Part shown: positions 38,228 through 56,532 of the stretch, one piece after another
Position numbering within the stretch: the first letter of the stretch is position 1
Layout of the letters: each line of letters starts with the position of its first letter
IMG/VR virus record: IMGVR_UViG_3300030673_000004
Coordinates: 186,001-250,000 of that record
Direction: 5' to 3' (one strand)
Length of the DNA: 64,000 bases
The notes under the pieces: generated by a model
Databases searched by the model: none
What the model was told of the DNA's origin: nothing
Seen by the model: only the letters and a program-made list of their open reading frames with translations
Translations under genes and position numbers: made by a program

Positions 38228-39244
38228 ATGTTCATTCCTAATCATACTGCACAGGATAGTGCAGTCGCTGCTGTTGTCCCAAAGTTGGACCTTTCTCAGG
38301 TTGACTTGTCTAAGTTGACTGTTGGTTTTGAGTTTGAATTTGTATCTCGGTTATCACATAAATCATTTGCTAAGTCTCTTCAGCTTGCTCAACCTACCTG
38401 GAAGATTGGCACTGTTCAAGATAAGCACGGACTTCCTAAGAATGTGAAGGACGTTGAGAAATACTCTGTTTGGAATGTAACTAGTGATGAGACTGTTCAG
38501 GAAGATGCTGAAGACCTTCTATCCTTGACACCTCATTATAGTATTGAGTTGATCTCTCCTGTACTTCAGTTGAATCAAGTTGGTGATATTCTTACACGTG
38601 TTTTTTCCTTGATTAAATCTACTGGTGGTAAAACTAACGAGAGTTGCGGTTTGCACGTTACATTCGGCCACCCCGACATTAATTCTGCGTTAACAAAGTT
38701 TGATCCGTTGAAACTTGGTATTTTTCTCAGAGAGGATAATTTGTTATCTAGATTCGGTAGAACGGATAATGCATTTGCTGATAATTTATCTAAGCGTATT
38801 GTTCAAGCGATCAATACTGAGATAGGATCGTCTGGGGATCAAGTTACTACACTAAAAGGATTGAATGTCTTTGATCATACACCAACATCCATACCCACGA
38901 CTGATAAAACAGGTCCGAAATTAACTGATGCTAATTTAGCTCAGATACTAGTAAGTCCGGCTTTCCGTAAGCGCATGGCTATGGTGGATCATTATACTAA
39001 TATCAGCTTACAATACTTGTCTAAGCATCGTGTAGAGATTCGGGGCATGGGCGGCGATTATTTGAATGTTTCAGTCAAAGAGCTTACAGGACGAGTACTT
39101 CACATGGCCCGCTGCGTGGCTATCGCTCTGATGCCTACGGCTTATGTTCCGCAGTATGTTGCAGCCGTCCGTAGAATGATGCCTGTGTACAAAGCACCTA
39201 AGAAGCCTATGTGGACACCTGCTAAGTCCGACGGGGATGAGTGA
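38228..39244 (+). CDS. Amidoligase_2 family protein, paralog 5 (catalytic domain only)
   Basis: VGFEFEF, IELISP, TNESCGLHVT, HYTNISL, VEIRGMGG. Confidence 0.85.
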   Translation: MFIPNHTAQDSAVAAVVPKLDLSQVDLSKLTVGFEFEFVSRLSHKSFAKSLQLAQPTWKIGTVQDKHGLPKNVKDVEKYSVWNVTSDETVQEDAEDLLSLTPHYSIELISPVLQLNQVGDILTRVFSLIKSTGGKTNESCGLHVTFGHPDINSALTKFDPLKLGIFLREDNLLSRFGRTDNAFADNLSKRIVQAINTEIGSSGDQVTTLKGLNVFDHTPTSIPTTDKTGPKLTDANLAQILVSPAFRKRMAMVDHYTNISLQYLSKHRVEIRGMGGDYLNVSVKELTGRVLHMARCVAIALMPTAYVPQYVAAVRRMMPVYKAPKKPMWTPAKSDGDE

Positions 39245-40704
39245 TGTTTATTCCTTTTGAAACTACCGCCGCAGTAGTTCCTGGTCTAGATTTTAGTGAT
39301 GTTAACATATCTAGACTTACTGTTGGTTTTGAATTTGAATTCATATCTCCTATTAGTCACAAAAAGTTTGCACAAGCTTTAAGTAAAAAGTACCCAAGTT
39401 GGAAAATTGGTGTGATTTCCAGTATTTACAATGCTCATGAGCAACTTGGTGCTGCTATGTATAATTCTTGGAATATAACAGGGGACGGTTCTATTGACGC
39501 TTCTCCTAATGAATTTGGGATAGAGCTTATTTCTCCTGTATTGAAATTATCCCAAGTATCAAAAATACTTGAATCTGTATTTTCTTTACTCAAGGCGCTT
39601 AAGTGTGAAACAAATGATAGTTGTGGCTTGCATGTTACCTTTGGTCATCCGAAGATTACAGCAAATTTAACATATTTTAATCCTCTTAAGTTCGGTGTAT
39701 TCTTGCAGGAGGATAAGTTATTAGCTCGTTTTGGTAGAACGGATAACGGTTTTTCCTTAAATACGTCAAAAGAGATATTGTATGAGTTACACGAAGAGAT
39801 GTTCCGAGATGACGTTACTAGAGTTGGTACGTCTATTATCTCACCCTGGTCACGAACACAATATGATAAAGAAACTAGCCGGACAGGTCCTAAGGCGACT
39901 GATGCGAACTTAGCTAAAGTTTTATTAGATCCTAGGCTGCGTCGTAGGTTAATCCCAATAGATCATTACCAAAACATAAGTTTATCTAAAATTAAAAATA
40001 ATCTAGTTGAAGTTCGTGGTATGGGTGGTAACTATTTAGCACAGAGTACTACAACACTTGTAAATATTGTTAAACACCTTGCTCGTTGTCTTGTGATCTC
40101 TTTATCGCCAACTGCATATCAGGCTCAATACATACTAGCTGTTAAACGGATGCTTAACGAGTACAACCCGAAAGACTCTGAGGTGGTTAAGCCGCAGGAT
40201 TTAATACCTGACGATATAGACGCAGAATATCCTACGTTGGATCTCTGGTCATCTGATGGTGGTCGTTTAATTCTATTTGGAACTAAGGAGACTCCCAGTA
40301 GAGGAGACTTCAAATTAAGTACAAATAACAACAGTAGTATTCATTTACATAATACTACTTTATATATAAAACTAAGCATAGATAGCATTAAAGACGGGGT
40401 ATCTTCTGATTTTGATTTTGAGCGTGTAGTTACTCAGGAGTTAGATTGGATCATAAGTATCTGTGTTAAGCTGAAAGCATCAATTAACAAACATACATCT
40501 ATTCCAAGTTTGACTAAATTTGCTATTACCACAGACAATATTAAGAAAATAGAACACTACTTTCCTTGGGCAGTGCATCTTGAATTGCCCCCAGATATCT
40601 TACAGATAGCTTATATAGGTTTTATACAGTCTTCTGATTTTCGTACCTGCTCCATTAAAAATCGACAATATTTTATGCGTGAGTGGAAAGCCAAAGTCCG
40701 GTAA
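39244..40704 (+). CDS. Amidoligase_2 family protein, paralog 6
   Basis: VGFEFEF, WNITGDGSI, GIELISP, TNDSCGLHVT, VEVRGMGG. Confidence 0.85.
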   Translation: MFIPFETTAAVVPGLDFSDVNISRLTVGFEFEFISPISHKKFAQALSKKYPSWKIGVISSIYNAHEQLGAAMYNSWNITGDGSIDASPNEFGIELISPVLKLSQVSKILESVFSLLKALKCETNDSCGLHVTFGHPKITANLTYFNPLKFGVFLQEDKLLARFGRTDNGFSLNTSKEILYELHEEMFRDDVTRVGTSIISPWSRTQYDKETSRTGPKATDANLAKVLLDPRLRRRLIPIDHYQNISLSKIKNNLVEVRGMGGNYLAQSTTTLVNIVKHLARCLVISLSPTAYQAQYILAVKRMLNEYNPKDSEVVKPQDLIPDDIDAEYPTLDLWSSDGGRLILFGTKETPSRGDFKLSTNNNSSIHLHNTTLYIKLSIDSIKDGVSSDFDFERVVTQELDWIISICVKLKASINKHTSIPSLTKFAITTDNIKKIEHYFPWAVHLELPPDILQIAYIGFIQSSDFRTCSIKNRQYFMREWKAKVR

Positions 40705-40713
40705 CTTCTTTGT

Positions 40714-43641
40714 ATGACTGACGCTAATTCATCTAGAGTTCGCCAAACATGGCAACGTGGGGAGCAGGCCGAGTTCCGTTTCTCTTTTGTTAACTCTTCC
40801 GGTGATGCTTTAGTTCCTTTGGATGCTAATAAATATCCGAATTATGCTTTTGTATCCCCATCGGGTCTTCAGATACAGACAGGGACAGCTCAAGCTTATG
40901 GCACTCCTGGGCAATATCGTGTTTTATGGACAATTCCTCAAGATAGTGAGTTATCTAATGATGAGATGTCCTGGCAGTTACAAGTAAACTTTGTTACGGC
41001 GCGCCGTTCTCAATTAACACATACCTTTGATTTCTTTGTTGTAGACAAGCAGGTAACAGCTACAGGTCGTAAAGATGTTGTAAACTTAGCTATTCAAGGA
41101 TCACCTCATCGTTTGTTTTGGCGTGGTGATTTTGATCCGGCGGAGATTACATTGGAGTGTTATGCCTCTCCCTACGCAGATAACTCTGATCTAGCCCCAA
41201 TTCCACATGCTGCTGCTCTAAATAAATCAGCTCTGACTAAAGTGATAGATGGTGATAGTATAGTTTACTATTATGAGATCCCCTCATCTGCGTTTACTTT
41301 ATGGGATCCTTTGAACAATCTGTATACTGGTCTGTGGTCTGTTCGTGAGACATCTGTATCTGAACTCCAAGTGGAGTATGATCAGTTTCGTGTCATCAAG
41401 AAGCAGATGGTTCAGTACATACAGTCTATTCGTTTCATGGTGGATAGATTCCAGCATAGGTTAGGTACCCCTCAGCATATTAGTGATGGAGATCTCTGCG
41501 AGGCTCTTACGGAGGGCTTGGGCCTGTTTAACGGTTGGTTCCCTGTATCTAACTACAACTGGACTGACTTTCCTATGCAGTGCTCTACATACTGGATTAT
41601 GCTTTCTACTTGGTGGATGCTGAATTCTCAACATATGCTCCAATCACAGCTCGCATTTTCTTTCTGTGTCACTGAGGATACTTATGTGTCTACAAATCGG
41701 GGTCTTGTGCAAGCTAAGTATTTGCGGCCAGGTGCCCTGGAGCATGATGTTCTAAAACTAGTAGCATCTATTGCTTTTCACCCAGATAGAGAAGCTGTTC
41801 TTACTGGTATTATAGCTAATTCTTCTGACATAAAAGACCAGAAATTAGGGTTATCTGAATTAGTTGCTTCTACAGCACCGGAAGTAGCAAGTAATTCAAT
41901 TTTGAGCATGTTTTCCAACTATGAGTTATCTCAGTTTGCCACTCATGATGAGTGGCGTCGTATCTTAATTGATTGTTCAGATGCTTTGTTTACATTTATT
42001 AATGAAACTCTTCTTGCAAATACCATAATCAGCACAAATGCTAAGTTTGACACAAAATTTAAGCTGCTTACACCTTATGGTAGAGATGTTCCTACTTGTG
42101 TTTGGGACCTTGGTGCAAAGCCTGTCTATAGATTAGAAACAGCGCACGGGTACTCTTTGAAAGCAACAGGAAATCACCCGGTATTAGTTTTAGATAAAGA
42201 ACTTAATGTACAAAACAAGAACTTAGCCGATATCTCTGTGGGTGATGTTGTCGCTATATCTAAGCGTCATGACAGTGCTGACGAGGATTGGGATATTGAT
42301 TTATCGTTTTTGGTGGATGCTGTTAATAGATACACAATTAAAGGTGCTAAAAATTACGAACTTCCCAGAAAAATGACTCCTGCCTTAGCTCGGGTACTCG
42401 GCTACATTACGAGTGAGGGCTATATAAATACTGAGGGGATTATATCTTTCTGTAATATAAATCAAATTTTATTAGATGACTACGTTAAAAACTTCACGGA
42501 ATGCTTTGGTGTTGCTCCGAAGTATAAAGGATTTCAGATAAGTAGTGCTGGAAATAAAGTACACTACTACGAAGAATCAAATCGTAAAATAGCCATGTTT
42601 TTGATTGGGTGCGGAGAGCAATTTAAGCAGGCACCTGACAAAGAAATTCCGTGGTCTATCATGGCAGCACCTCGTAGGTTAGCTCGTGAATTTATTCAAG
42701 CCTTTTTTGAGGGAGATGGGTCTTATACATCATATGATACGTCTAAGCAAAAAGGTAAAACTTTTATGAGCTTTGCATCCTCTAGTACAAAGATGCTAGA
42801 TCAATTTCAAAGCCTGCTGCTTAGATTTGGGATTATTACATCTAAGCATAGATATGCGTCAGCACAAGTTCCGCAAATACATGTACCAAGTTCTGCTATT
42901 GATATCTATGCAGATACCATAGGTTTTTGGTATAAGGGTAGAGATCATAAGCCGCGTGTTCGTTACTATGAGCAAGTAGAAGCATACCCTGAGTTTGTTG
43001 GTACTTATATTAAGTCTCTTTTTTCCGGAGCTAATAAGGGTTGGCATACAGATTCAGAAACAGGTAAAAAGTTTAGAGTGTATTCTGGTTTGACTTTGAA
43101 CGCAACTCAAGCTATTTTTGATAGCCGGTGTCCTACACAGAAAAATCTATTATTCTATTTAGAACAGCGTACAGAGTTGTTAGCTAAGTTAAAGCCTGAC
43201 GTTCTAAAGAAACTTAAGTATTTAGCTGATCTTGACTTTCAGTGGGAATCTGTACACAGTATAGATACACTGGAAACAGAAGAATGCGTTATAGACCCTA
43301 CTCTTCCAGATCGTGATACGGACTTAGCACACCACTTCTATGCTAATGGATTTGTTACCCATAACTCTGGCCAAGCCGTCACGCTAGATTATGATCAGAC
43401 AGGTGCAATTGACTCTGCTATTCAGCGTTTGAGCGAGTGGTTGAATGCACATATTACTCCACAAAAGATTATGATTAGCCGTCAGCGTTCTGGTGTGGGT
43501 AGTTTGGGCATTCGTACTCAGCGTGCTTTTGGTGCATACAACCGTGTTCTCCGGTATGACTCGGCTCGTGGTATTGATTCCAACGTTGGGTTTGAAGGTG
43601 TTCTTAATGCAGCCGCGACTTACGGTATCTTCCTGCCTTAA
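40714..43641 (+). CDS. intein-containing probable virion (neck/adaptor-like) protein; ~408 aa after splicing
   Basis: beta-sandwich-like N-terminus plus helical IRFMVDR...ISDGDL..AL..GL..FN region; exteins rejoin as AFSF/SGQAVTLDYD. Confidence 0.65.
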   Translation: MTDANSSRVRQTWQRGEQAEFRFSFVNSSGDALVPLDANKYPNYAFVSPSGLQIQTGTAQAYGTPGQYRVLWTIPQDSELSNDEMSWQLQVNFVTARRSQLTHTFDFFVVDKQVTATGRKDVVNLAIQGSPHRLFWRGDFDPAEITLECYASPYADNSDLAPIPHAAALNKSALTKVIDGDSIVYYYEIPSSAFTLWDPLNNLYTGLWSVRETSVSELQVEYDQFRVIKKQMVQYIQSIRFMVDRFQHRLGTPQHISDGDLCEALTEGLGLFNGWFPVSNYNWTDFPMQCSTYWIMLSTWWMLNSQHMLQSQLAFSFCVTEDTYVSTNRGLVQAKYLRPGALEHDVLKLVASIAFHPDREAVLTGIIANSSDIKDQKLGLSELVASTAPEVASNSILSMFSNYELSQFATHDEWRRILIDCSDALFTFINETLLANTIISTNAKFDTKFKLLTPYGRDVPTCVWDLGAKPVYRLETAHGYSLKATGNHPVLVLDKELNVQNKNLADISVGDVVAISKRHDSADEDWDIDLSFLVDAVNRYTIKGAKNYELPRKMTPALARVLGYITSEGYINTEGIISFCNINQILLDDYVKNFTECFGVAPKYKGFQISSAGNKVHYYEESNRKIAMFLIGCGEQFKQAPDKEIPWSIMAAPRRLAREFIQAFFEGDGSYTSYDTSKQKGKTFMSFASSSTKMLDQFQSLLLRFGIITSKHRYASAQVPQIHVPSSAIDIYADTIGFWYKGRDHKPRVRYYEQVEAYPEFVGTYIKSLFSGANKGWHTDSETGKKFRVYSGLTLNATQAIFDSRCPTQKNLLFYLEQRTELLAKLKPDVLKKLKYLADLDFQWESVHSIDTLETEECVIDPTLPDRDTDLAHHFYANGFVTHNSGQAVTLDYDQTGAIDSAIQRLSEWLNAHITPQKIMISRQRSGVGSLGIRTQRAFGAYNRVLRYDSARGIDSNVGFEGVLNAAATYGIFLP
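41665..43365 (+). mobile_element. intein with LAGLIDADG homing endonuclease (C318-N884, 567 aa)
   Basis: block A CVTEDTYV, block B LKATGNHPV, LARVLGYITSEG and FIQAFFEGDGS, block G FYANGFVTHN/S. Confidence 0.93.
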
Positions 43642-48840: not shown

Positions 48841-49308
48841 ATGCATATGCCAAAATATCTGACCATCTATATAGACATGGATGATACTCTGTTTGACTTT
48901 ACAGGGGCCTACCGTCAAGCTCTAGAGGATAATCCGGCACAACCCTTTCCTCAGTCACAGATAGGATTCTTTCTGGGACTTCGACCGATCACTGGAGCGC
49001 TACAGGCTTATGACACTCTTAGAGAGCAAGGCCACCGTGTCTTGTTCTTAACTGCTCCATCTGTGCGTAATCCCATGTGCTACACAGAAAAGCGGATGAG
49101 CATAGAGCGTCACTTCGGCTTTGATGCTTGTACAGACCTAATAATTGCTCACGACAAAAGCTTGTTACGCGGGGACATTCTTGTGGATGATAAATGCGAC
49201 TCTAATAAGCAGACCGAGTTCCATGGGTATCTCCTAAACTTCGGTTCGTTGCAGTACCCAGACTGGACTAGTGTACTGCGGGGGATCTCGGGGATCGCTA
49301 ACCTGTAG
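48841..49308 (+). CDS. HAD-family 5'(3')-deoxyribonucleotidase (NT5C-like)
   Basis: IYIDMDDTL, FLTAPS, EKR, DKSLLRGDILVDD. Confidence 0.9.
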   Translation: MHMPKYLTIYIDMDDTLFDFTGAYRQALEDNPAQPFPQSQIGFFLGLRPITGALQAYDTLREQGHRVLFLTAPSVRNPMCYTEKRMSIERHFGFDACTDLIIAHDKSLLRGDILVDDKCDSNKQTEFHGYLLNFGSLQYPDWTSVLRGISGIANL

Positions 49309-49366: not shown

Positions 49367-49468
49367 TTGACATTTTTGGCTTTGCTTGTATATTTCGTAA
49401 TACGAAGCAGTTGGTTAGCGAATTACCTCCTGTTCGCTCTTTGACAGTGTGTGTTTGTACCTAGTGCG
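49367..49468 (+). promoter_or_regulatory. CRISPR promoter and leader
   Basis: TTGACA(49367-49372)-N16-TATATT(49389-49394), next to the most conserved repeats. Confidence 0.7.
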
Positions 49469-50013
49469 GTAGCACTTTGTACCCATGTGTGAATTGAAAC
49501 AAGTATGACCATGCATGCCGACAGCTTGAGGCGGGTAGCACTTTGTACCCATGTGTGAATTGAAACCGAGTATACCCTCGATCCCACCCAAGCTCCTTCG
49601 TAGCACTTTGTACCCATGTGTGAATTGAAACGAGGTATTGTCTTAATAAGGCATTAGCTAATGGGTAGCACTTTGTACCCATGTGTGAATTGAAACTCGC
49701 TGACAGGCTTAACGACGTTGGATCGCCCGTAGCATTTTGTACCCATGTGTGAATTGAAACTTCTCGACAGCCGCTCCGACAATTCCTGACAAGTAGCACT
49801 TTGCATCCCTGTGTGACTTGAAACAACGCTAGGTCGTGCGAGAGGCTTTGGCCAGAGTAGCATTTTGTACCCATGTGTGAATTGAAACATGGCGGCAGAT
49901 TAGTTGGCGGAGAAATTTGGGTAGTACTTTGTACCCCTGTGTGGATTGAAACTCTTACAGTTCGCATATCTGGATTGACATCCAGGAGCTTGTACCCATG
50001 TGTGAATTGAAAC
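49469..50013 (+). CRISPR. CRISPR array, 9 repeats and 8 spacers (32-34 bp)
   Basis: repeat GTAGCACTTTGTACCCATGTGTGAATTGAAAC at 49469, 49535, 49600, 49665 (identical), 49729, 49793, 49857, 49921 (variants) and 49985 (3-nt deletion). Confidence 0.97.
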
Positions 50014-50064
50014 CTTGTACCATTGGGCAGTCGCCGTGATTTTGTATTTGACTAAAATTTAAGC

Positions 50065-50092
50065 TTGACAAACAAATTTTTTGAACTATATT
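50065..50092 (+). promoter_or_regulatory. sigma70-like promoter for the ncRNA
   Basis: TTGACA(50065-50070)-N16-TATATT(50087-50092). Confidence 0.7.
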
Positions 50093-50098
50093 TTGTTC

Positions 50099-50280
50099 TA
50101 CAAGTCGAGCACAGCGACTCTAAATCAATGCCGGGGGGTATTTCAGGTCCTCGTTAACAGTCCGAAGAAGAACTCACTGGAGGGCTTCGCTGCTAGGGTA
50201 ACCTAGCGAAACGGCTGCCAAATTCACACACAAGTCCCTGCCTAGGTGCGAAATAAAACCTAGGCAGGGATCTTTTTGTT
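50099..50280 (+). ncRNA. putative tracrRNA/scaffold RNA
   Basis: non-coding stretch between promoter and terminator; AATTCACACA(50221-50230) complements repeat TGTGTGAATT; TTTCA(50141-50145) complements repeat TGAAA; internal GCTAGG-GTAA-CCTAGC hairpin. Confidence 0.7.
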
Positions 50281-50282
50281 TT
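50235..50282 (+). terminator. intrinsic terminator of the ncRNA
   Basis: perfect 13-bp stem TCCCTGCCTAGGT/ACCTAGGCAGGGA followed by TCTTTTTGTTTT. Confidence 0.85.
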
Positions 50283-50308
50283 ACCCTATTTGAACTTGGA
50301 GATGAACG

Positions 50309-52225
50309 TTGGCTATTCGCAAAAAGACTCCAATCTTGGGCGCTGCTCCGGGTGATGTGCGAACGACTAAGTCCTATAAGTTTGAGCTGTATCCAACAAA
50401 AGATCAGAGAGACAAGTTGTTTACTTTTCTTTGGGCAACTCGGTGCATGTACAATGATGCGCTTGAATGGTTGTTTACGGATAAGATGCTGTTTGATATG
50501 GGTGACATTGACGTGTGGCTAGAGCATCGCGTACTGGCTCTTCTTAGTGATACTGAGAAGAAACAAGCTATTCTTACTTTGGAGTTGGAAGAGCTGCAAA
50601 AACGGCCAGGCACACAATGTAAACAAAATAAGATTCTGGATAGCCTAGAGAAGATGCGTGGCAAACATGATACGTTTGTTTTAGGTTTAGCAAAAATGCG
50701 CACAGAATATGAGAAAAAGATCTGGCCACGTCTCTCTAGAGAGGACATGACTGTTCTTGCTGGTGCTATTCGGCGCTTGAATAAGTCACACCCTGCTTAT
50801 GACGCAAGTTTGGGAATTCCAGCGACTACATTTAATTCGACAGTAGCCAAACGCCTTAGCCAAGCACAGAAAAGCATTTACACGTCAGATCGTCTTTCTA
50901 AGAAAGACGGCAACTTTCTTGTTTCTCGTAGACGTGAATCTACTAAAACACACATTGTTACGTACACAGATCCGGAATCTGTTCAAAAGGTAGAGAACTT
51001 CCCGAATTTCAGATCTCGTACCTCTAGCTTTATTTTAGAGGCGCAGAAACCTTCCGCATTTATCAATGGTAAACTAGGTAATCTTAAGATTACCCCTGCA
51101 CTTACTGTTCAATTTTGTGCTTATGTTGACATTCTCACGGGATCAGCCAAAGAAATTACACAGGCTATCTCAGCTAGGCGTGTTATTGGGATGTCCGTAG
51201 GTCAACAGATTACTGTAGCAGTTGATGGTACTGGGCGTTGGTGGACTAGTATTACTATTGATACCAACCATAGTCCTGTGTTGTATCCTGTTGACATTAA
51301 TAAAACTATGGCACTTGATTTTCGTCCAGCCGCTATTACAACTAGTACCGGATTCCGGATGATGCGGAGTCTTGATGCTCTTCGTTCTGTAACTAGCTAT
51401 CCTAATTGTGCCGCTCTGGCTAAGAAGTATGAAAAGAATCAAAACGCTATTGTCATGAAGCAGCGTGAGGTTTCTCGTAAGTATGAGCTGCATAAGCGAG
51501 CTAGCCAGACGTTCAAGACTACACACGTTTGTCCTATTTGTGGCGCAGTTGCCTCAGACGAAGCTGTTGCTGATCTTAACACTTTTAAGTGTTCTTGTGG
51601 GTTCTCCGTGAGGATGAAATCTAAGAATCATCGTAAAGCCAAGTTTGAGCTATCTATGTTGCATGCTCGTAGTGCTGGTATACTGACAAACTTAAGACGG
51701 CACATTGTGCATTCCTGGGTAGCATCAGAAGCAACTACATTTGTCATTCAAGATATTCCTTTGAACGAAGGTTTCAAGGCAAAGGCAAAGACAAAGAAAG
51801 ATGGGGAGAAGGACAAAGATAAGAAGCCTCGCAGATGGCGTGGCTGCGCTATCCGACGGCGCAATATCAACAGGTTCACACATCAGCTAGCTGCTGGAAC
51901 ATTGCGTAGCATGCTTGTTGCGTCTGCTGCTACTATGCAGAAGAACGTGATCGTGGTCTCTTCTGACTATGATCCTCTGCACACCTGTAGCTGCGGTCAT
52001 GTTATTTCTACTGGTGCTACAATGTGTGATGATGTTGTTGCTAATGCACCTACCCGTCTACTGTATATTCCGTTTGATCACCCAAAACTTGTTCTTGGAG
52101 CTAAGTCAGGAACGGATGCTTTACGCAGATTTGGTGAAGCATTAACTCAGAAAGAAGCCCGTAAGCAAGCTAAGTTACTGCGAAAGGCTGCGTTGACTTC
52201 TGGCCAGGGGATTGCTGTTGATTAA
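50309..52225 (+). CDS. TnpB/Cas12f-like type V effector, RuvC-II Glu replaced by Gln
   Basis: KSYKFELYPTKDQ...TRCMYNDAL (IS605 OrfB-like N-terminus); RuvC-I MALD337; SKNHRKAK..L..LH helix; RuvC-II FVIQ481D; candidate RuvC-III D574/D575; GGAGA RBS. Confidence 0.85.
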   Translation: MAIRKKTPILGAAPGDVRTTKSYKFELYPTKDQRDKLFTFLWATRCMYNDALEWLFTDKMLFDMGDIDVWLEHRVLALLSDTEKKQAILTLELEELQKRPGTQCKQNKILDSLEKMRGKHDTFVLGLAKMRTEYEKKIWPRLSREDMTVLAGAIRRLNKSHPAYDASLGIPATTFNSTVAKRLSQAQKSIYTSDRLSKKDGNFLVSRRRESTKTHIVTYTDPESVQKVENFPNFRSRTSSFILEAQKPSAFINGKLGNLKITPALTVQFCAYVDILTGSAKEITQAISARRVIGMSVGQQITVAVDGTGRWWTSITIDTNHSPVLYPVDINKTMALDFRPAAITTSTGFRMMRSLDALRSVTSYPNCAALAKKYEKNQNAIVMKQREVSRKYELHKRASQTFKTTHVCPICGAVASDEAVADLNTFKCSCGFSVRMKSKNHRKAKFELSMLHARSAGILTNLRRHIVHSWVASEATTFVIQDIPLNEGFKAKAKTKKDGEKDKDKKPRRWRGCAIRRRNINRFTHQLAAGTLRSMLVASAATMQKNVIVVSSDYDPLHTCSCGHVISTGATMCDDVVANAPTRLLYIPFDHPKLVLGAKSGTDALRRFGEALTQKEARKQAKLLRKAALTSGQGIAVD

Positions 52226-52226
52226 A

Positions 52227-54399
52227 GTGAAAAAGCTTCGCAAGTATCAGGAAGAGACACTTACGTGGGCTTTCCATGTACTGGCTAATCCGCAGCGTCC
52301 ACATTTGTTGATTGGGCAGCCACCGGGTGCAGGAAAGTCTATGCAGGCCCATTTGATTAGTCGGTTTGCTCTGGAATGTCCTAGTCTAGGGATCAAGAAA
52401 ATTCTGGTACTGACACCATTGATAGCAATCCGTTTTGGGTTTGCACGTGATCGGGACTACGGCGTAACGTATACGTCTGACTCGTTTAGCTGGCTTCAGA
52501 ACGGTGGCGTTCGGCCACTAGACTTTCAGACAACAGATGGTGCTCTTCTAGCTATGCTGCAGACAGATCGTGTGGGTGCCTATATTGCATGTCACGCATC
52601 TTTGGCTAACGCAAAAGCTGAAGATGCTCATGCTTTTGAGCAGTTGGACGACTGCTCAGATTTACTTATTGTAGTTGATGAAGCACATCACCTTAATGCT
52701 GAATAACCTGACGAGTGTCGTACAGTGTGCTGTAGATAAAGGTGCTCGAATGCTGCTACTGACAGCAACGCCGTTTGTATCTACCGGTTCGTGGGAGTTC
52801 ATCTTAAAGAATAAGACAAAGTCTCGTATACGTCCGCTTAGTCAGCATATTGAAGAAGGCTTTGCACCTCGCCTGGAAAATGAGATCATCTATAGCGATA
52901 TCTGGCCTATGGAGAACGGACTCCCTTCGCCTGAGTTTGTGGCACGTAAAACGATTGAGACGTTTTTAGCAAATGATCGAGTCAAGAGTCTTGTTGTTGT
53001 ACCTGCTACACCGTCATGCCGGGCTTGCGGTACAACGGAGGAATACGTCGATAAGATCATAGACGAGTGCTACAAACTTGTGCCACGTACAGATATTTCT
53101 TTGTTGAATACTCTGGGCGATTCTAAGACAGATATTATCACCAAAGAGTGCCGTGGTGATACCTATCACGATATTCAATTCACGCCAACCACAGGCAAAT
53201 ACCGTGAGGGTGTGGATGATCCCAGGCTAGCCTGTATTCAATACTTTGTTCGTCCGAAGTCCTCTATTCTTAGCGTTCAGATTCCGGGTAGGACTCTTCG
53301 CGAGAAACCTGAAGGATATCTGCCTGTGCAGTTTAGATTTAAGTCTAAACAGATATTCCATACTTCTTCGGCTGCTGGCGCCCTGATAGAATTTTCCTGT
53401 GATGTTCTAAAGTACATTCTCCGAACAGAGAATCCTTTAGCTGCTGCTACTCTGCCACCAATCAAAGCTATGATCGGCGAACTGCGTATGCGCAGGCGGC
53501 AAGCAGACAATTCAGGTGATATTAAATTAGCACAAAGTTATGCTGAATTTGCGGATGCCTTGGAAGATGACGCTGAAACAACTATGTGTGAGGCTCTTGC
53601 CGACTTAGATGCTCAAGTTACGCTGGCCTATGAGACTCAGCAAGGAGTAACTCTTCCTAAGCTAATTCAGCAGTATGGAATGGACTCAAACGTTGTTAAA
53701 TTGGCTATGTATCAACAGCTTAAGAATCATCCTGATAAGTTATTGGAGCACATGGAGTCTATCATTGAACGGCGTACACGAAATCACAAAGGCGGAAAGC
53801 ATAAGCCGGGAAGTACGCCGTCATTTGAGATTGCCGACTTTTACCTTCATATGCTTGCAGAGCAGTATGCTGATGAAGAAATAGATCAGTTTGTGACAAC
53901 TATTGATAGTCGCGTTTTGACCGAGTGGTCTGATCGCTGGGAGAAACTTAGAGACAGGACAGATCTGGAAAAAGCTGACGGTCTAGTTCAGGCTTTCAGC
54001 ACGGGTAGCCTTCGTCGTGACGATCATATCAACTACCCATCGTTTGAAGAGTTTCGGCTGCGTAATCTGCTCAGTACGGTGCTGCCCGCAGTTAAACGTC
54101 CCAGTTTAGAGGCTCGTGCGCTGTTAGATGCTGCTGGGTTGTCTAGTCGCATTTTTGCTGATAACTGGAATGATCCTCTTGTTTGTAACAATGGTACCTT
54201 GCTAACTCTTCAGCGTTTTGTACCTTTGGCATCTTGGGTGAAGGCGCATGGAAGGCTACCCCAGATTTCTTCTGATCTAGAAGAGAGGTCCGCCTATAAA
54301 TTCTACAGAATCTATAAGGACAAAATGACTGTAGTTGCTTCTCAGCACACTGCTAGTATCATACAGGAACTACATATAGGAGAAGTCTTGGATGCCTAA
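52227..54399 (+). CDS. SF2 (DExH, Res-like) helicase split by a frameshift at ~52704
   Basis: LRKYQ, GQPPGAGKS, VLTP and IVVDEAHH in ORF 52212-52706; LTATP, EGVDDP, QIPGRTLR and HA-like HGRLP in ORF 52675-54399. Confidence 0.85.
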
Positions 54400-55039
54400 G
54401 ACTAAGACAACGTCACCTGAGTTTGTTTATGCTTCTCATGGCAAGCAGGAATACCGCAAGTATGTTCAGGGCCAATTCGATATTCATTCTCTTGGTGATT
54501 TCCATGGTAAGTGGCTTGAGCCCATTGGGGCAGGTGCTTTAACATTTGATTCATTACTAGCAACCGGGCGTATAGATGAAGCTAGCCTGATTGGGTTAGA
54601 CAAGAACCCTAGGGATATTGCAGGATCACGTCAGAACATCGAGCAGTGCCGCACTAAATTCCCAAAAGCTCAGTTCTTCTGTCAAGATTGGCGTGAGTTC
54701 TGTCTACAGTATCGCGATCCAATTAGGTACATCGTTTACGATTTGTATACATCTACTTTTGGGCCGGAGCTTCTAAGCAATTTGCAGGCTATTTTTAGTT
54801 TAGTGCAGCAGAGCTTGAAGTACCATGGTCAAGTTCTTCTCGCTGTAACGGCAGATTTGCAGGCAACTATGCGACATAAGAAAGACGTACAAGACTTTGA
54901 GCATCTGTTGAAACGTGTATTTGAATCACCTACTATTCGGCATAGCCGAATATCCTGTAAAGACATGTTTCTATATACCAGCAATCGCGATCAGATGGGT
55001 GTTTTGATCATTGAATTCTTTAACAATACTGTTCCTTAG
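54392..55039 (+). CDS. putative class I SAM-dependent methyltransferase-fold protein
   Basis: WLEPIGAG (motif I), LIGLDKN, FFCQDW, YIVYDLY; overlaps the helicase stop. Confidence 0.6.
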   Translation: MPKTKTTSPEFVYASHGKQEYRKYVQGQFDIHSLGDFHGKWLEPIGAGALTFDSLLATGRIDEASLIGLDKNPRDIAGSRQNIEQCRTKFPKAQFFCQDWREFCLQYRDPIRYIVYDLYTSTFGPELLSNLQAIFSLVQQSLKYHGQVLLAVTADLQATMRHKKDVQDFEHLLKRVFESPTIRHSRISCKDMFLYTSNRDQMGVLIIEFFNNTVP

Positions 55040-55054
55040 TTAAGGAGACACAAC

Positions 55055-55411
55055 ATGCATTCTCTGCTGACCGCGCTAACAACCTGGGATACGGCCGTAC
55101 TTGATAATTATACTTTAGCTCAGGAGGCACAGCAGCACTATATTAAATTGTTCCAGCAAGAAGGCATACAACGTCAGCTAAATCAATTCTCCGAAGAAGT
55201 TGCTGAATTAACCATTGAGCTGATGAAGCGTATGCGGGGACGAGTTACTGTAAATGCTGGCATTGCCGAAGAATTAGCTGATTGTCTAATTCTGTTTGAT
55301 CAAATGATGCGCTTTTATGGAATTTCTAAGTCTGATTTGGATATCGCATTGCATGAAAAGCTGTGTAAATTTAACGAGACTATGACTAAGATCCTAAAGG
55401 AGAACCCATGA
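55055..55411 (+). CDS. MazG-like NTP pyrophosphohydrolase
   Basis: SEEVAEL...IAEELADC. Confidence 0.75.
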   Translation: MHSLLTALTTWDTAVLDNYTLAQEAQQHYIKLFQQEGIQRQLNQFSEEVAELTIELMKRMRGRVTVNAGIAEELADCLILFDQMMRFYGISKSDLDIALHEKLCKFNETMTKILKENP

Positions 55412-55693: not shown

Positions 55694-55993
55694 ATGTACC
55701 GTACTATTTTTGGCAGTGTAATCTTTGCGTTTGCTCTGGTACACGCCGCAGATAATAAGCCATGGGATTCACAAAATATAGATCCGGTTGCTGTCCAAGC
55801 ATCTGCGAGTTCTTCTTGCTCTGACAGCGCTAAACGAGCATTCAGTCAAGCAATTCAATCTTCCCTGACGAAGAATAACAAGTTCAGTGTTCATCTATTG
55901 ATTCAAAATGGTAAGAAGTACGGTGTGCTTCGTGAAGTTCTGGACTATGTCCAATACTGGAAGCGACAAGATATTGGGATGTTGGAGCAATAA
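55694..55993 (+). CDS. exported hypothetical protein
   Basis: MYRTIFGSVIFAFALVHA signal peptide; AAGGA RBS. Confidence 0.6.
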   Translation: MYRTIFGSVIFAFALVHAADNKPWDSQNIDPVAVQASASSSCSDSAKRAFSQAIQSSLTKNNKFSVHLLIQNGKKYGVLREVLDYVQYWKRQDIGMLEQ

Positions 55994-56532
55994 TGTTTCA
56001 AGTCAAAAAGACAATACAGGCATTGTCTTATTTTTGTAGAGAATCTAATAGTTCTGTCAAGATATCTACGGCTTTAGCTTGGTTGTTTCTTGCCGATGTG
56101 TCACATTTGCGAGAATACGGAAGAACCATATCGGAAGATACTTATATCCGAACAGCTACTGGATTTGAGCCGGTGAGTACTCGTGACCTACTTACTAGGC
56201 ACATCAAGGCATATGTAACTACGCCGGATGTGGTTTACTGTCGTCTGTGTTTGGATGTAACGCCTAATGATGTGGATATACGCAAGGGAGCTATTTGGGA
56301 TACCGATGAGATGTCTGATTCCGATACTCAAGTTCTAGCAACTACTTATTCCGCATATCATAGATTTAGTCGTAGTCAGCTTAGAGCCATTGTTAGGACA
56401 TTTCCAGAATGGCAAGCAGCGCACTTAAAATCTGTAGTATCTGCTGAATTGTTCCTAACAGGTGCTACTGACATAGCAAAAATTCATTTCTATCTAAGTC
56501 TTAGATTTCCTTCTCGACTGGAAATTGTATGA
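55993..56532 (+). CDS. Panacea/SocA-like (DUF4065) antitoxin-domain protein
   Basis: LFLADVSHLREYGRTISEDTY, DEMSDSD...L, FPEW. Confidence 0.7.
   Translation: MFQVKKTIQALSYFCRESNSSVKISTALAWLFLADVSHLREYGRTISEDTYIRTATGFEPVSTRDLLTRHIKAYVTTPDVVYCRLCLDVTPNDVDIRKGAIWDTDEMSDSDTQVLATTYSAYHRFSRSQLRAIVRTFPEWQAAHLKSVVSAELFLTGATDIAKIHFYLSLRFPSRLEIV

Follow-up and report, generated by a model that had tools for sequence, protein, structure and literature searches.

Miniature type V CRISPR (short palindromic repeats that are clustered and regularly interspaced) systems that depend on a trans-activating CRISPR RNA (tracrRNA), such as type V-F with its effector Cas12f, combine a compact TnpB-derived effector with a CRISPR RNA (crRNA) in which the repeat precedes the spacer, a tracrRNA carrying a 3′ anti-repeat, and a T-rich protospacer-adjacent motif (PAM) on the 5′ side. 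In Cas12m, Cas12c, and Cas12k, RuvC is inactivated or not used on DNA, and these proteins act by binding, in a setting of mobile-element competition. The nuclease-dead Cas12k and Cas12m are still classed as type V. Type IV-A systems (Csf proteins and DinG) join a nuclease-less RNA-guided effector to a helicase, are borne on mobile elements, have no adaptation module of their own, probably borrow adaptation from type I, and silence rivals (PMC11656645). TldR and dCas12f-sigmaE, as described in a TnpB/Cas12 census (PMC10691335), are TnpB-family proteins with an eroded RuvC that keep a guide RNA and a conserved partner protein. Here we describe a locus that shares traits with each of these, found at positions 49367-55039 of a 64-kb stretch of phage DNA, hereafter the window (record positions 186,001-250,000 of IMG/VR record IMGVR_UViG_3300030673_000004). 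The source phage is an uncultivated contig of ~375.6 kb listed in IMG/VR and independently assembled from several JGI peat metagenome samples. We consider it fairly probable that the locus is a phage-encoded, tracrRNA-dependent, nuclease-dead type V-like system that is RNA-guided, does not cleave, and is directed at a rival element. Its features are as follows.

49367-49394, + strand: array promoter TTGACA-N16-TATATT, sigma-70-like, agreeing with the consensus at 11 of 12 positions
49395-49468, + strand: leader of 74 nucleotides (nt), the stretch from the promoter to the first repeat
49469-50013, + strand: CRISPR array in which eight spacers of 29-34 nt separate nine 32-nt repeats (GTAGCACTTTGTACCCATGTGTGAATTGAAAC)
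50014-50027, + strand: conserved 14-nt stretch 3′ of the last repeat (CTTGTACCATTGGG), which recurs in the related loci L008 and L003
50065-50092, + strand: second promoter, 11 of 12 consensus positions, hexamers identical to those of the array promoter, serving the tracr-like RNA and probably the effector operon too
50099-50285, + strand: tracr-like non-coding RNA (ncRNA), conserved in six loci (fold z = -3.46), with a core hairpin (50130-50154), a second stem, an anti-repeat (50221-50230), and a terminator hairpin with a U-tract (50233-50280)
50309-52225, + strand: effector of 638 amino acids (aa) with a TnpB/Cas12 fold and a degenerate RuvC, from hidden Markov model (HMM), PDB, and Foldseek matches
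52227-52706, + strand: N-terminal piece of a superfamily 2 (SF2) helicase, motifs I to II (DEAH), in an open reading frame (ORF) beginning at 52212/52227 with a GTG at 52227 (Pfam ResIII, 29.3 bits against a cut-off of 22.5)
52699-52706, + strand: helicase frameshift site, where a +1 shift is required between 'HHLNA' and 'NNLT'
52675-54399, + strand: remainder of the SF2 helicase in the +1 frame, from motif III (TAT, 'LLLTATPF') onward, with the RecA2 domain and the C-terminal region, from alignment to orthologues
54392-55039, + strand: class-I (Rossmann) methyltransferase-fold protein of 215 aa with the motifs KWLEPIGxxA, LIGID, and YDLYTST, from AlphaFold2 and Foldseek

A reading made from the letters of the window without database searches (the sequence-only reading) had proposed a compact, phage-borne type V-like locus made of an array, a second promoter driving an anti-repeat-bearing ncRNA, and a RuvC-altered TnpB/Cas12-family effector, a combination that it did not recognise as a named subtype. 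The anatomy, the fold, the HMM scores, and the alignment columns described below support these points.

The array orientation given by the first promoter is consistent with the degenerate distal repeat, the anti-repeat on the + strand, and the 5′ PAM. Seven repeats are identical or nearly so, repeat 6 carries four changes, and the final one has degenerated in its 5′ half. From the end of the array to the effector start is a distance of 296 nt. Across the family, the repeats are 32 nt long, begin with 5′ GTCGC, contain a central hairpin, and end in ...GGATTGAAAC (for example, GTCGCAACTCGTACAGGTGTATGGATTGAAAC in L003). Folding gave the same hairpin with an 11-nt tail for the L008 and L006 repeats and showed that the window repeat has lost it. 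Type I-C arrays are built alike, with a 32-nt repeat starting with GTCGC, a central hairpin, an 11-nt ...GATTGAAAC tail, spacers of 32-34 nt, and a 5′-TTC PAM. One repeat that we compared, from Xanthomonas citri, we take to be of type I-C. It is printed in PMC9504256, where its subtype is not stated, and has the same architecture as the family repeats; a Thermus type I-C repeat shares their ending, with TTC as its PAM (PMC10989782). Unlike type I-C arrays, the locus has an anti-repeat RNA and a Cas12-like protein beside the array and a window repeat without the hairpin, and none of the type I-C cas genes (Cas5d, Cas8c, Cas7, Cas3, Cas1, Cas2, or Cas4) was found in the 64-kb window. Because the repeats and PAM are I-C-like and the window has no cas1 or cas2, spacers would probably be taken up in trans through a host I-C or I-B adaptation module, by analogy with type IV-A3, for which uptake in trans via type I-E is reported.

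The 14-mer CTWGTACCATTGRR lies directly 3′ of the last repeat both in the window and in L008 (346-359), and it opens spacer 14 of L003 (872-885). No target for it was found in the sequences compared. That such a 'terminal spacer' is conserved between loci whose proteins are ~30% identical points to a common guide or a processing signal.

The ncRNA is ~190 nt long, with a minimum free energy of -65.3 kcal/mol. Its core, GYCGGGG-N4-TTWCAG-NN-CCTCGT, is present in every effector locus, and RNAalifold returned a 7-bp core hairpin and a second stem, with double-sided changes at three core pairs and at 6 of the 14 predicted pairs overall. In each ncRNA, a conserved 'GCTAAA' is followed by an anti-repeat complementary to the repeat of its own locus, the mean duplex energy being -26.6 kcal/mol with the own repeat versus -17.0 kcal/mol with the repeats of other loci. 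The anti-repeat of L003 forms 22 perfect base pairs. The ncRNAs of L003 and L008 lead directly from the anti-repeat into the effector start codon, without an intervening terminator, so the ncRNA would there be the 5′ untranslated region (UTR) of the operon. The window anti-repeat is an exact 10-nt complement of the repeat (AATTCACACA, 50221-50230) plus a few more pairs, and its duplex energy is no better than that of shuffled repeats (119 of 500 shuffles score as well); we accept it because of its positional homology with the much stronger anti-repeats of related loci, not because of its energy. No Rfam family matches the ncRNA, and a search of IMG/VR with the core pattern returned nothing beyond the locus itself. 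A separately encoded ncRNA with an anti-repeat, as found here, is the hallmark of the tracrRNA-dependent type V subtypes (V-B, V-E, V-F, V-G, and V-K), and we predict that this one is a tracrRNA.

The effector has weak but mutually consistent sequence matches to Pfam HTH_OrfB_IS605 (6e-8), Cas12f1-like TNB (1e-4), PADLOC Cas12f (3e-7), phrog_506 'transposase' (2e-11), and the PDB TnpB entry 8iaz (2.6e-4). All family models score it far below their cut-offs (NCBIfam guided_TnpB, 26.4 bits versus 100; C2c8, 15.1 versus 350; PADLOC Cas12f, a partial match of 27.9 bits), and by HMM it fails membership of Cas12f (V-F), C2c8 (V-U2), and guided TnpB alike. The fold was recovered from structure: with an AlphaFold model built on eight sequences (predicted local distance difference test, pLDDT, 66.8), Foldseek ranks 1-39 were all TnpB, Cas12, or Fanzor proteins (TnpB, Cas12p, Cas12f, Cas12m, Cas-lambda, Cas12h, Cas12n, Cas12k, Cas12i, Fanzor, and others). 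A first, word-based protein search had returned only the effector itself and one fragment; HMMER found nine relatives in 1.84 billion representative proteins.

The RuvC columns were read from an L-INS-i alignment anchored on two members with the canonical motifs VGVDLG, IVLENL, and ERDKNAS. In place of the D/E/D triad, the window effector has D/Q/V: the D337-type Asp is kept, the RuvC-II Glu is replaced by Gln in 'FVIQDIP', and the RuvC-III Asp by Val in 'DVVANA'. The seven array- or methyltransferase-linked members have Q, K, or T at the RuvC-II position and V, A, T, S, or Q at the RuvC-III position where these columns are covered, and two linked members have His in RuvC-I. The triad is intact in both relatives that stand alone (P0007 in L006 and the protein at L009:16752-18254). 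An extra zinc ribbon is inserted ahead of RuvC-II in the effector. The locus thus has the single TnpB/Cas12-fold effector (WED-REC-RuvC-zinc finger) beside a CRISPR array that defines type V but lacks the catalytic RuvC D-E-D triad, and from its sequence the effector would be unable to cut DNA by RuvC.

To find targets, one metagenome scan was made with a degenerate pattern covering spacers 4 and 5, and all spacers were then compared with the contigs recovered. Spacer 5 (49761-49792) matches at 32 of 32 positions in four repeat-free contigs of sister samples. Spacer 1 (49501-49534; 31/34) and spacer 7 (49889-49920; 30/32) match the same 5.5-kb contig as spacer 5, the protospacers lying in a gene for an HTH_3/XRE regulator, in an ORF of 426 aa, and in a gene of the GGACT family. 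With the orientation set by the promoter and anti-repeat, 5′-[C/G]TTC precedes all three protospacers, that is, a 5′ PAM on the non-target strand combined with a repeat-then-spacer crRNA, as in type V. At all three the spacer equals the sense strand, so the crRNA would pair with the template strand, the geometry with which dead Cas12a represses best (PMC5460296). In target variants (L020:1062-1095 and L021:3095-3128), the mismatches to spacer 1 are confined to the nine PAM-proximal positions, and the distal 25 nt are identical; in L020, 5 of the 9 PAM-proximal positions differ versus 0 of the 25 distal ones, and the PAM TTC has become TTT. At the sequence level, this pattern looks like that expected of escape from a seed-dependent effector.

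In IMG/VR, spacers 1, 2, and 4 (exact 26-nt matches) and spacer 5 were found only in the array, and the target element is absent from this database. The target contig has no match among 50,697 GenBank phage records, carries no PADLOC defence system, and its 426-aa ORF has no GTDB relative. Among the spacers themselves, spacers 1-3 (49501-49664) have short motifs in common (AGTAT close to the 5′ end, AGCT around position 24), and spacers 4 and 5 (49697-49792) share GACAG and CGAC in register, with 14 of 32 positions identical; this sharing may be chance or reflect related protospacers.

We compared the window with L001-L002 (assemblies base-identical over 5.8 kb), L003, L004/L005, L006, L007, L008, L009-L011, L013-L014, L016, and L026. 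Those with linked effectors are organized as follows, in gene order.

L003: a 111-kb contig with at least 16 repeats, the ncRNA, an effector ~28% identical to that of the window, an intact 713-aa helicase, and a 221-aa methyltransferase-fold gene
L004/L005: six repeats followed by the ncRNA, then an effector of 589 aa, a helicase of 731 aa, and a 220-aa gene
L008: at least five repeats followed by the ncRNA, then an effector in fragments, a helicase of 705 aa, and a 224-aa gene
L007: a repeat, the ncRNA, and a truncated effector directly 5′ of the methyltransferase-fold gene, with no helicase

The layout of array, ncRNA, effector, helicase, and methyltransferase is kept in L003, L004/L005, and L008 at effector identities of 23-35% and in phages whose guanine-cytosine (GC) content ranges from 28% to 51%, with start and stop codons that overlap or nearly abut in every such locus. 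Four array-bearing lineages, the window included, offer enough context to judge, and in each of them the helicase and the methyltransferase-fold gene are conserved neighbours. The spacers differ completely between the loci recovered. Neither TnpA nor a serine recombinase occurs in the window or in any effector locus, the homologues lie outside IS605 elements, and the RNA 5′ of the gene and the multi-spacer array are not the arrangement of an IS200/IS605 or IS607 TnpB.

Two relatives of ~500 aa, both with the D/E/D triad intact, occur as stand-alone genes in contigs of T4-like phages (L006:1826-3700 and L009:16440-18330). Each has the same tracr-like RNA 5′ and, 3′, a promoter and a single repeat with one fixed 'spacer', and neither adjoins a helicase or methyltransferase gene. 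The L009 protein (L009:16752-18254) is 56% identical to P0007 and has a second solo repeat 5′ of it; its guide matches at 17 of 20 positions within the next gene (PIF1-like, L009:18793). These stand-alone loci look like the ancestral state, and possibly represent an RNA-guided homing element.

The helicase is broken in the window phage. Its N-terminal piece aligns with residues 1-175 of the intact 705-731-aa orthologues and ends in '...VVDEAHHLNAE*', and the remainder matches orthologue residues ~176 to the end with no further stops. The orthologues contain ResIII, DEAD, and Helicase_C domains and ~300 C-terminal aa without a confident family. SF2 motifs I, II, and III and the RecA2 domain are present in the window, divided over two frames, and united in one intact polypeptide in the orthologues. 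A 5.8-kb stretch including the break is base-identical in two further assemblies (L001 and L002), and the array-ncRNA stretch (49367-50310) is identical in a third; because of this identity across independent assemblies, the break is a property of the phage population and not an assembly slip. Programmed +1 frameshifting was considered and judged unlikely, because the gene is one codon shorter than its orthologues at this point, as from a 2-nt deletion; the site, GCU GAA UAA C, also offers no slippery re-pairing. Two terminator-like hairpins (52596-52660, + strand) lie within the N-terminal piece just 5′ of the frameshift, and the regional number of such sites equals the chance expectation.

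The methyltransferase-fold ORF overlaps the helicase stop by 8 nt. Its AlphaFold2 model (pLDDT 89.7) gave 572 Foldseek matches at E <= 0.001; among the matches listed, 50 of 50 PDB hits were methyltransferases dependent on S-adenosylmethionine (SAM), with template modelling (TM) scores of 0.39-0.57, and the nearest structures were RNA and small-molecule methyltransferases. The protein has no target-recognition domain. Sequence comparison was less informative: Pfam Methyltransf_31 scored E = 0.008 (16.2 bits versus a cut-off of 27), and a profile search against PDB sequences found nothing useful, structure comparison being required. The 21 homologues have 20 invariant columns (including E43, G46, D70, and D117), and at 36-50% identity to its homologues this is the best conserved of the three genes. 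A search of 185,579 species genomes, with a smaller methyltransferase alignment as the query, returned no relatives. As modelled, the protein has the features of a class I SAM methyltransferase, namely a Rossmann-like seven-strand fold, a SAM loop rich in Gly, and acidic residues that follow strands 2 and 4. The sequence-only reading had described three co-oriented genes with almost no gaps, the last a methyltransferase-fold gene whose ATG at 54392 overlaps the helicase stop. The gene order, the close junctions, and this overlap stood up, and the fold is supported by the model; the single helicase ORF did not, being split just after motif II.

Compared with the systems introduced above, the locus is closest in its effector to type V-F: PADLOC Cas12f is its best Cas12 HMM match, and Cas12f structures are among the top Foldseek matches. 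It differs in HMM scores far under the cut-offs, in the loss of the RuvC-II Glu and RuvC-III Asp, in the zinc ribbon before RuvC-II, in a tracr-like RNA placed in the 5′ UTR of the effector operon, in class 1 (I-C)-like repeats, and in an operon with a helicase and a methyltransferase-fold gene. Cas12m structures are likewise among the top matches of the effector model. Unlike Cas12m, which has no tracrRNA, the locus has a tracr-like RNA, and sequence-level membership and partner genes separate it from Cas12m, Cas12c, and Cas12k. No Tn7 genes accompany it as they do Cas12k: tnsB, tnsC, and tniQ, which mark type V-K CRISPR-associated transposons, are missing beside the effector, and no transposase or AAA+ regulator domains occur among the neighbours. 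The resemblance to type IV-A would be functional only, by analogy, as the effector there is a multi-subunit class 1 complex, versus a single Cas12-like protein here, and the helicase there is DinG, versus a ResIII-type SF2 helicase here; Csf1, Csf2, Csf3, and Csf5 were not found, and the PADLOC type IV models returned only a DinG motif (E = 0.004 over 22 residues). TldR and dCas12f-sigmaE use fixed guides or omega-RNA arrays on the host's own promoters, whereas this locus has a multi-spacer array, a PAM, and a foreign target. Cas12r of Thermus phages was also considered and rejected, since its RuvC is active, it uses no tracrRNA, and its array lies downstream. The accessible part of PMC10691335 mentions a Cas12h-Cas3 link and inactivated V-U groups, with no mention there of a Cas12-helicase-methyltransferase combination; the effector family may be one of the 40 Cas12-U groups of that study. 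No description of such an operon was found in the searchable literature, and both DNA and tblastn searches of the GenBank phage records were without a match for the locus or the effector.

We propose that the array would be transcribed from its own promoter, that the 3′ anti-repeat of the ncRNA would pair with the 3′ part of each repeat, and that both RNAs would load the 638-aa TnpB/Cas12-fold protein. The effector would then recognise DNA beside a 5′-TTC PAM and form an R-loop with the template strand of genes. It would not cut by RuvC, since the RuvC-II Glu and RuvC-III Asp are replaced, and would most likely act by blocking transcription or replication rather than by cleavage. The system would be aimed at a specific element that co-occurs with the phage; because three of the eight spacers match one element, it would serve in a conflict whose other party is another element or a variable host locus. 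The SF2 (ResIII-type) helicase and the small SAM-methyltransferase-fold protein would be accessory partners, the R-loop being the place where the helicase is loaded, in the way of DinG in type IV-A. Because its helicase gene is frameshifted, the effector of the window phage would probably work alone or with a split helicase.

Several observations weigh against this proposal. The sense-strand bias comes from 3 of 3 spacers only (p about 0.125), and the target, seen only on contigs of at most 5.5 kb, may be either a mobile element or a host locus. The RuvC status rests on the alignment, because the effector model is of low confidence. Overlapping genes are common in phages, so the tight spacing is weak evidence of coupling. 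The locus may also be decaying in the window phage, where a frameshift interrupts the helicase gene between motifs II and III, the anti-repeat measures only 10 nt, and one Cys pair is gone from the C-terminal zinc finger (the 'VCG' of a CxxC present in the 75%-identical P0002). Decay carried to its end would leave a non-working relic, with a frameshift in all assemblies covering it and an anti-repeat of 10 nt versus 22 nt in L003. Such a relic is hard to square with two promoters at 11 of 12 consensus positions, seven repeats identical or nearly so, full-length effector and methyltransferase ORFs with intact invariant residues, a spacer 5 that is perfect against a co-occurring target, and spacer-1 site variants with seed and PAM changes, and we regard it as decidedly improbable. 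We give even less credence to the array being a hijacker that serves a host type I-C (or I-B) Cascade and Cas3, with the TnpB-like protein and its RNA otherwise employed (in array regulation, or as a domesticated transcription factor). The I-C-like repeats (32 nt, GTCGC, hairpin, 11-nt ...GAATTGAAAC tail), the TTC PAM found in both I-C and I-B, and the window without adaptation genes would fit such use. In every locus, however, the ncRNA lies between array and effector and bears at its 3′ end an anti-repeat to the repeat of that locus, the window repeat has lost the hairpin required for Cas5d-type processing, and type V is just as typically associated with a T-rich PAM on the 5′ side. Use by a host Cascade and use by the effector are also not mutually exclusive.

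The place of the helicase and methyltransferase in the system is harder to judge, and we hold their partnership with the effector tentatively, at a little less than an even chance on the sequence data. Recruitment of either protein to DNA chosen by the spacers, which the sequence-only reading had suggested, is conjectural. It is favoured because the operon is kept down to 23% effector identity, because RuvC has been lost exactly in the linked members and kept in the unlinked ones, and because helicase partners of nuclease-less CRISPR effectors have a precedent in type IV-A DinG. It is weakened because the pair exists independently, the association may have a single origin, and phage genomes are generally compact, and also because the window phage has a broken helicase beside an array that still matches a co-occurring target. 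L009-L011 carry the helicase-methyltransferase pair with no effector next to it, as do L013-L014, where an extra gene lies between, and the methyltransferase-fold gene occurs alone in L016 and L026. The helicases of these effector-less loci are true homologues (E = 2e-43 and 3e-20), and no domain is common to the effector and their longer, 894-aa helicase. A single clade of 13 members, well supported in the methyltransferase tree, holds all effector-linked copies together with the effector-less L009 group; because they form a single clade, the linkage may be one ancient inherited event. These points could be explained by a self-contained array, ncRNA, and dead effector that only binds, as Cas12m or Cas12c does, inserted in one ancestor beside a separate phage module (for nucleic-acid modification or remodelling, for example); the effector and methyltransferase-fold gene of L007, without a helicase, and the window's broken helicase beside a spacer 5 matching at 32/32 would agree with this. 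Against such unrelated neighbours stand a gene order with overlapping or abutting codons kept to 23% effector identity and 28-51% GC, intact-RuvC relatives that are exactly those not adjoining the pair, and L009, in which 6 kb separates the pair from an intact stand-alone nuclease. We find the self-contained system with unrelated neighbours rather unlikely. Equally doubtful to us is the fullest form of the partnership, in which the dead Cas12-like protein would be a targeting subunit for helicase and methyltransferase: either the class 2 equivalent of type IV-A, in which a helicase loaded at the R-loop would drive silencing or eviction over long range, or a natural device for RNA-guided methylation or remodelling that would mark or disable the DNA of a rival element at sites set by the spacers, in both cases with I-C-borrowed repeats fed by host adaptation. 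Near the effector-less module, an IS607-like pair (a serine resolvase and a canonical 430-aa TnpB) lies directly 3′ of the helicase-methyltransferase genes at L009:11125-13073 and L012:2884-4844; it is unrelated to the effector family.

The family adds a very rare, phage-only branch to the TnpB/Cas12 radiation and lays out an exaptation path within one family, from a relative whose nuclease is intact and which has a tracr-like RNA and a solo repeat to a nuclease-dead relative with a multi-spacer array in a helicase/methyltransferase operon. If the partnership is true, this would be the first single-protein CRISPR effector working through a helicase or methyltransferase, and RNA-guided helicase loading or methylation would be directly testable with a 600-aa protein and a simple TTC PAM. 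Even without it, the locus would be a clear example from nature of how a class 2 effector and a tracrRNA have adapted to repeats of class 1 (I-C-like) type, and of a binding-only phage CRISPR system set against a co-occurring element whose variants carry escape-like seed and PAM changes.

The remainder of the window is of phage character, with a portal protein (phrog_16240, 1.7e-112) and an ATP-dependent DNA ligase. In line with the sequence-only reading, cas1, cas2, cas4, TnpA, Tn7, transposase, and recombinase domains are absent, both among the 33 largest window ORFs and in the Pfam calls for 40309-62225. Pfam Amidoligase_2 is matched by 6 of these 33 ORFs, which are paralogues (window 1-47340, e.g., 39241-40704), and Radical_SAM by 2 of them; the CRISPR locus is flanked by an NT5C gene (48841-49308) and a MazG-like pyrophosphohydrolase gene (55055-55411). 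Together, these genes point to a large nucleotide or DNA-modification gene set. About 1 kb 3′ of the methyltransferase-fold gene, a 179-aa ORF (55993-56532) has a SocA_Panacea (antitoxin-type) domain by Pfam. A third promoter-like site (48818-48790, - strand; 11 of 12 positions), with the same TTGACA/TATATT hexamers as the locus promoters, is directed away from the locus and suggests a promoter class common to this phage region. Finally, a 975-aa ORF at 40714-43641 carries an intein with a LAGLIDADG domain, and a homologous intein-bearing ORF of 975-979 aa lies close to the effector-helicase-methyltransferase operon in L003 and L008, which makes the window phage and the L003 and L008 phages syntenic relatives.

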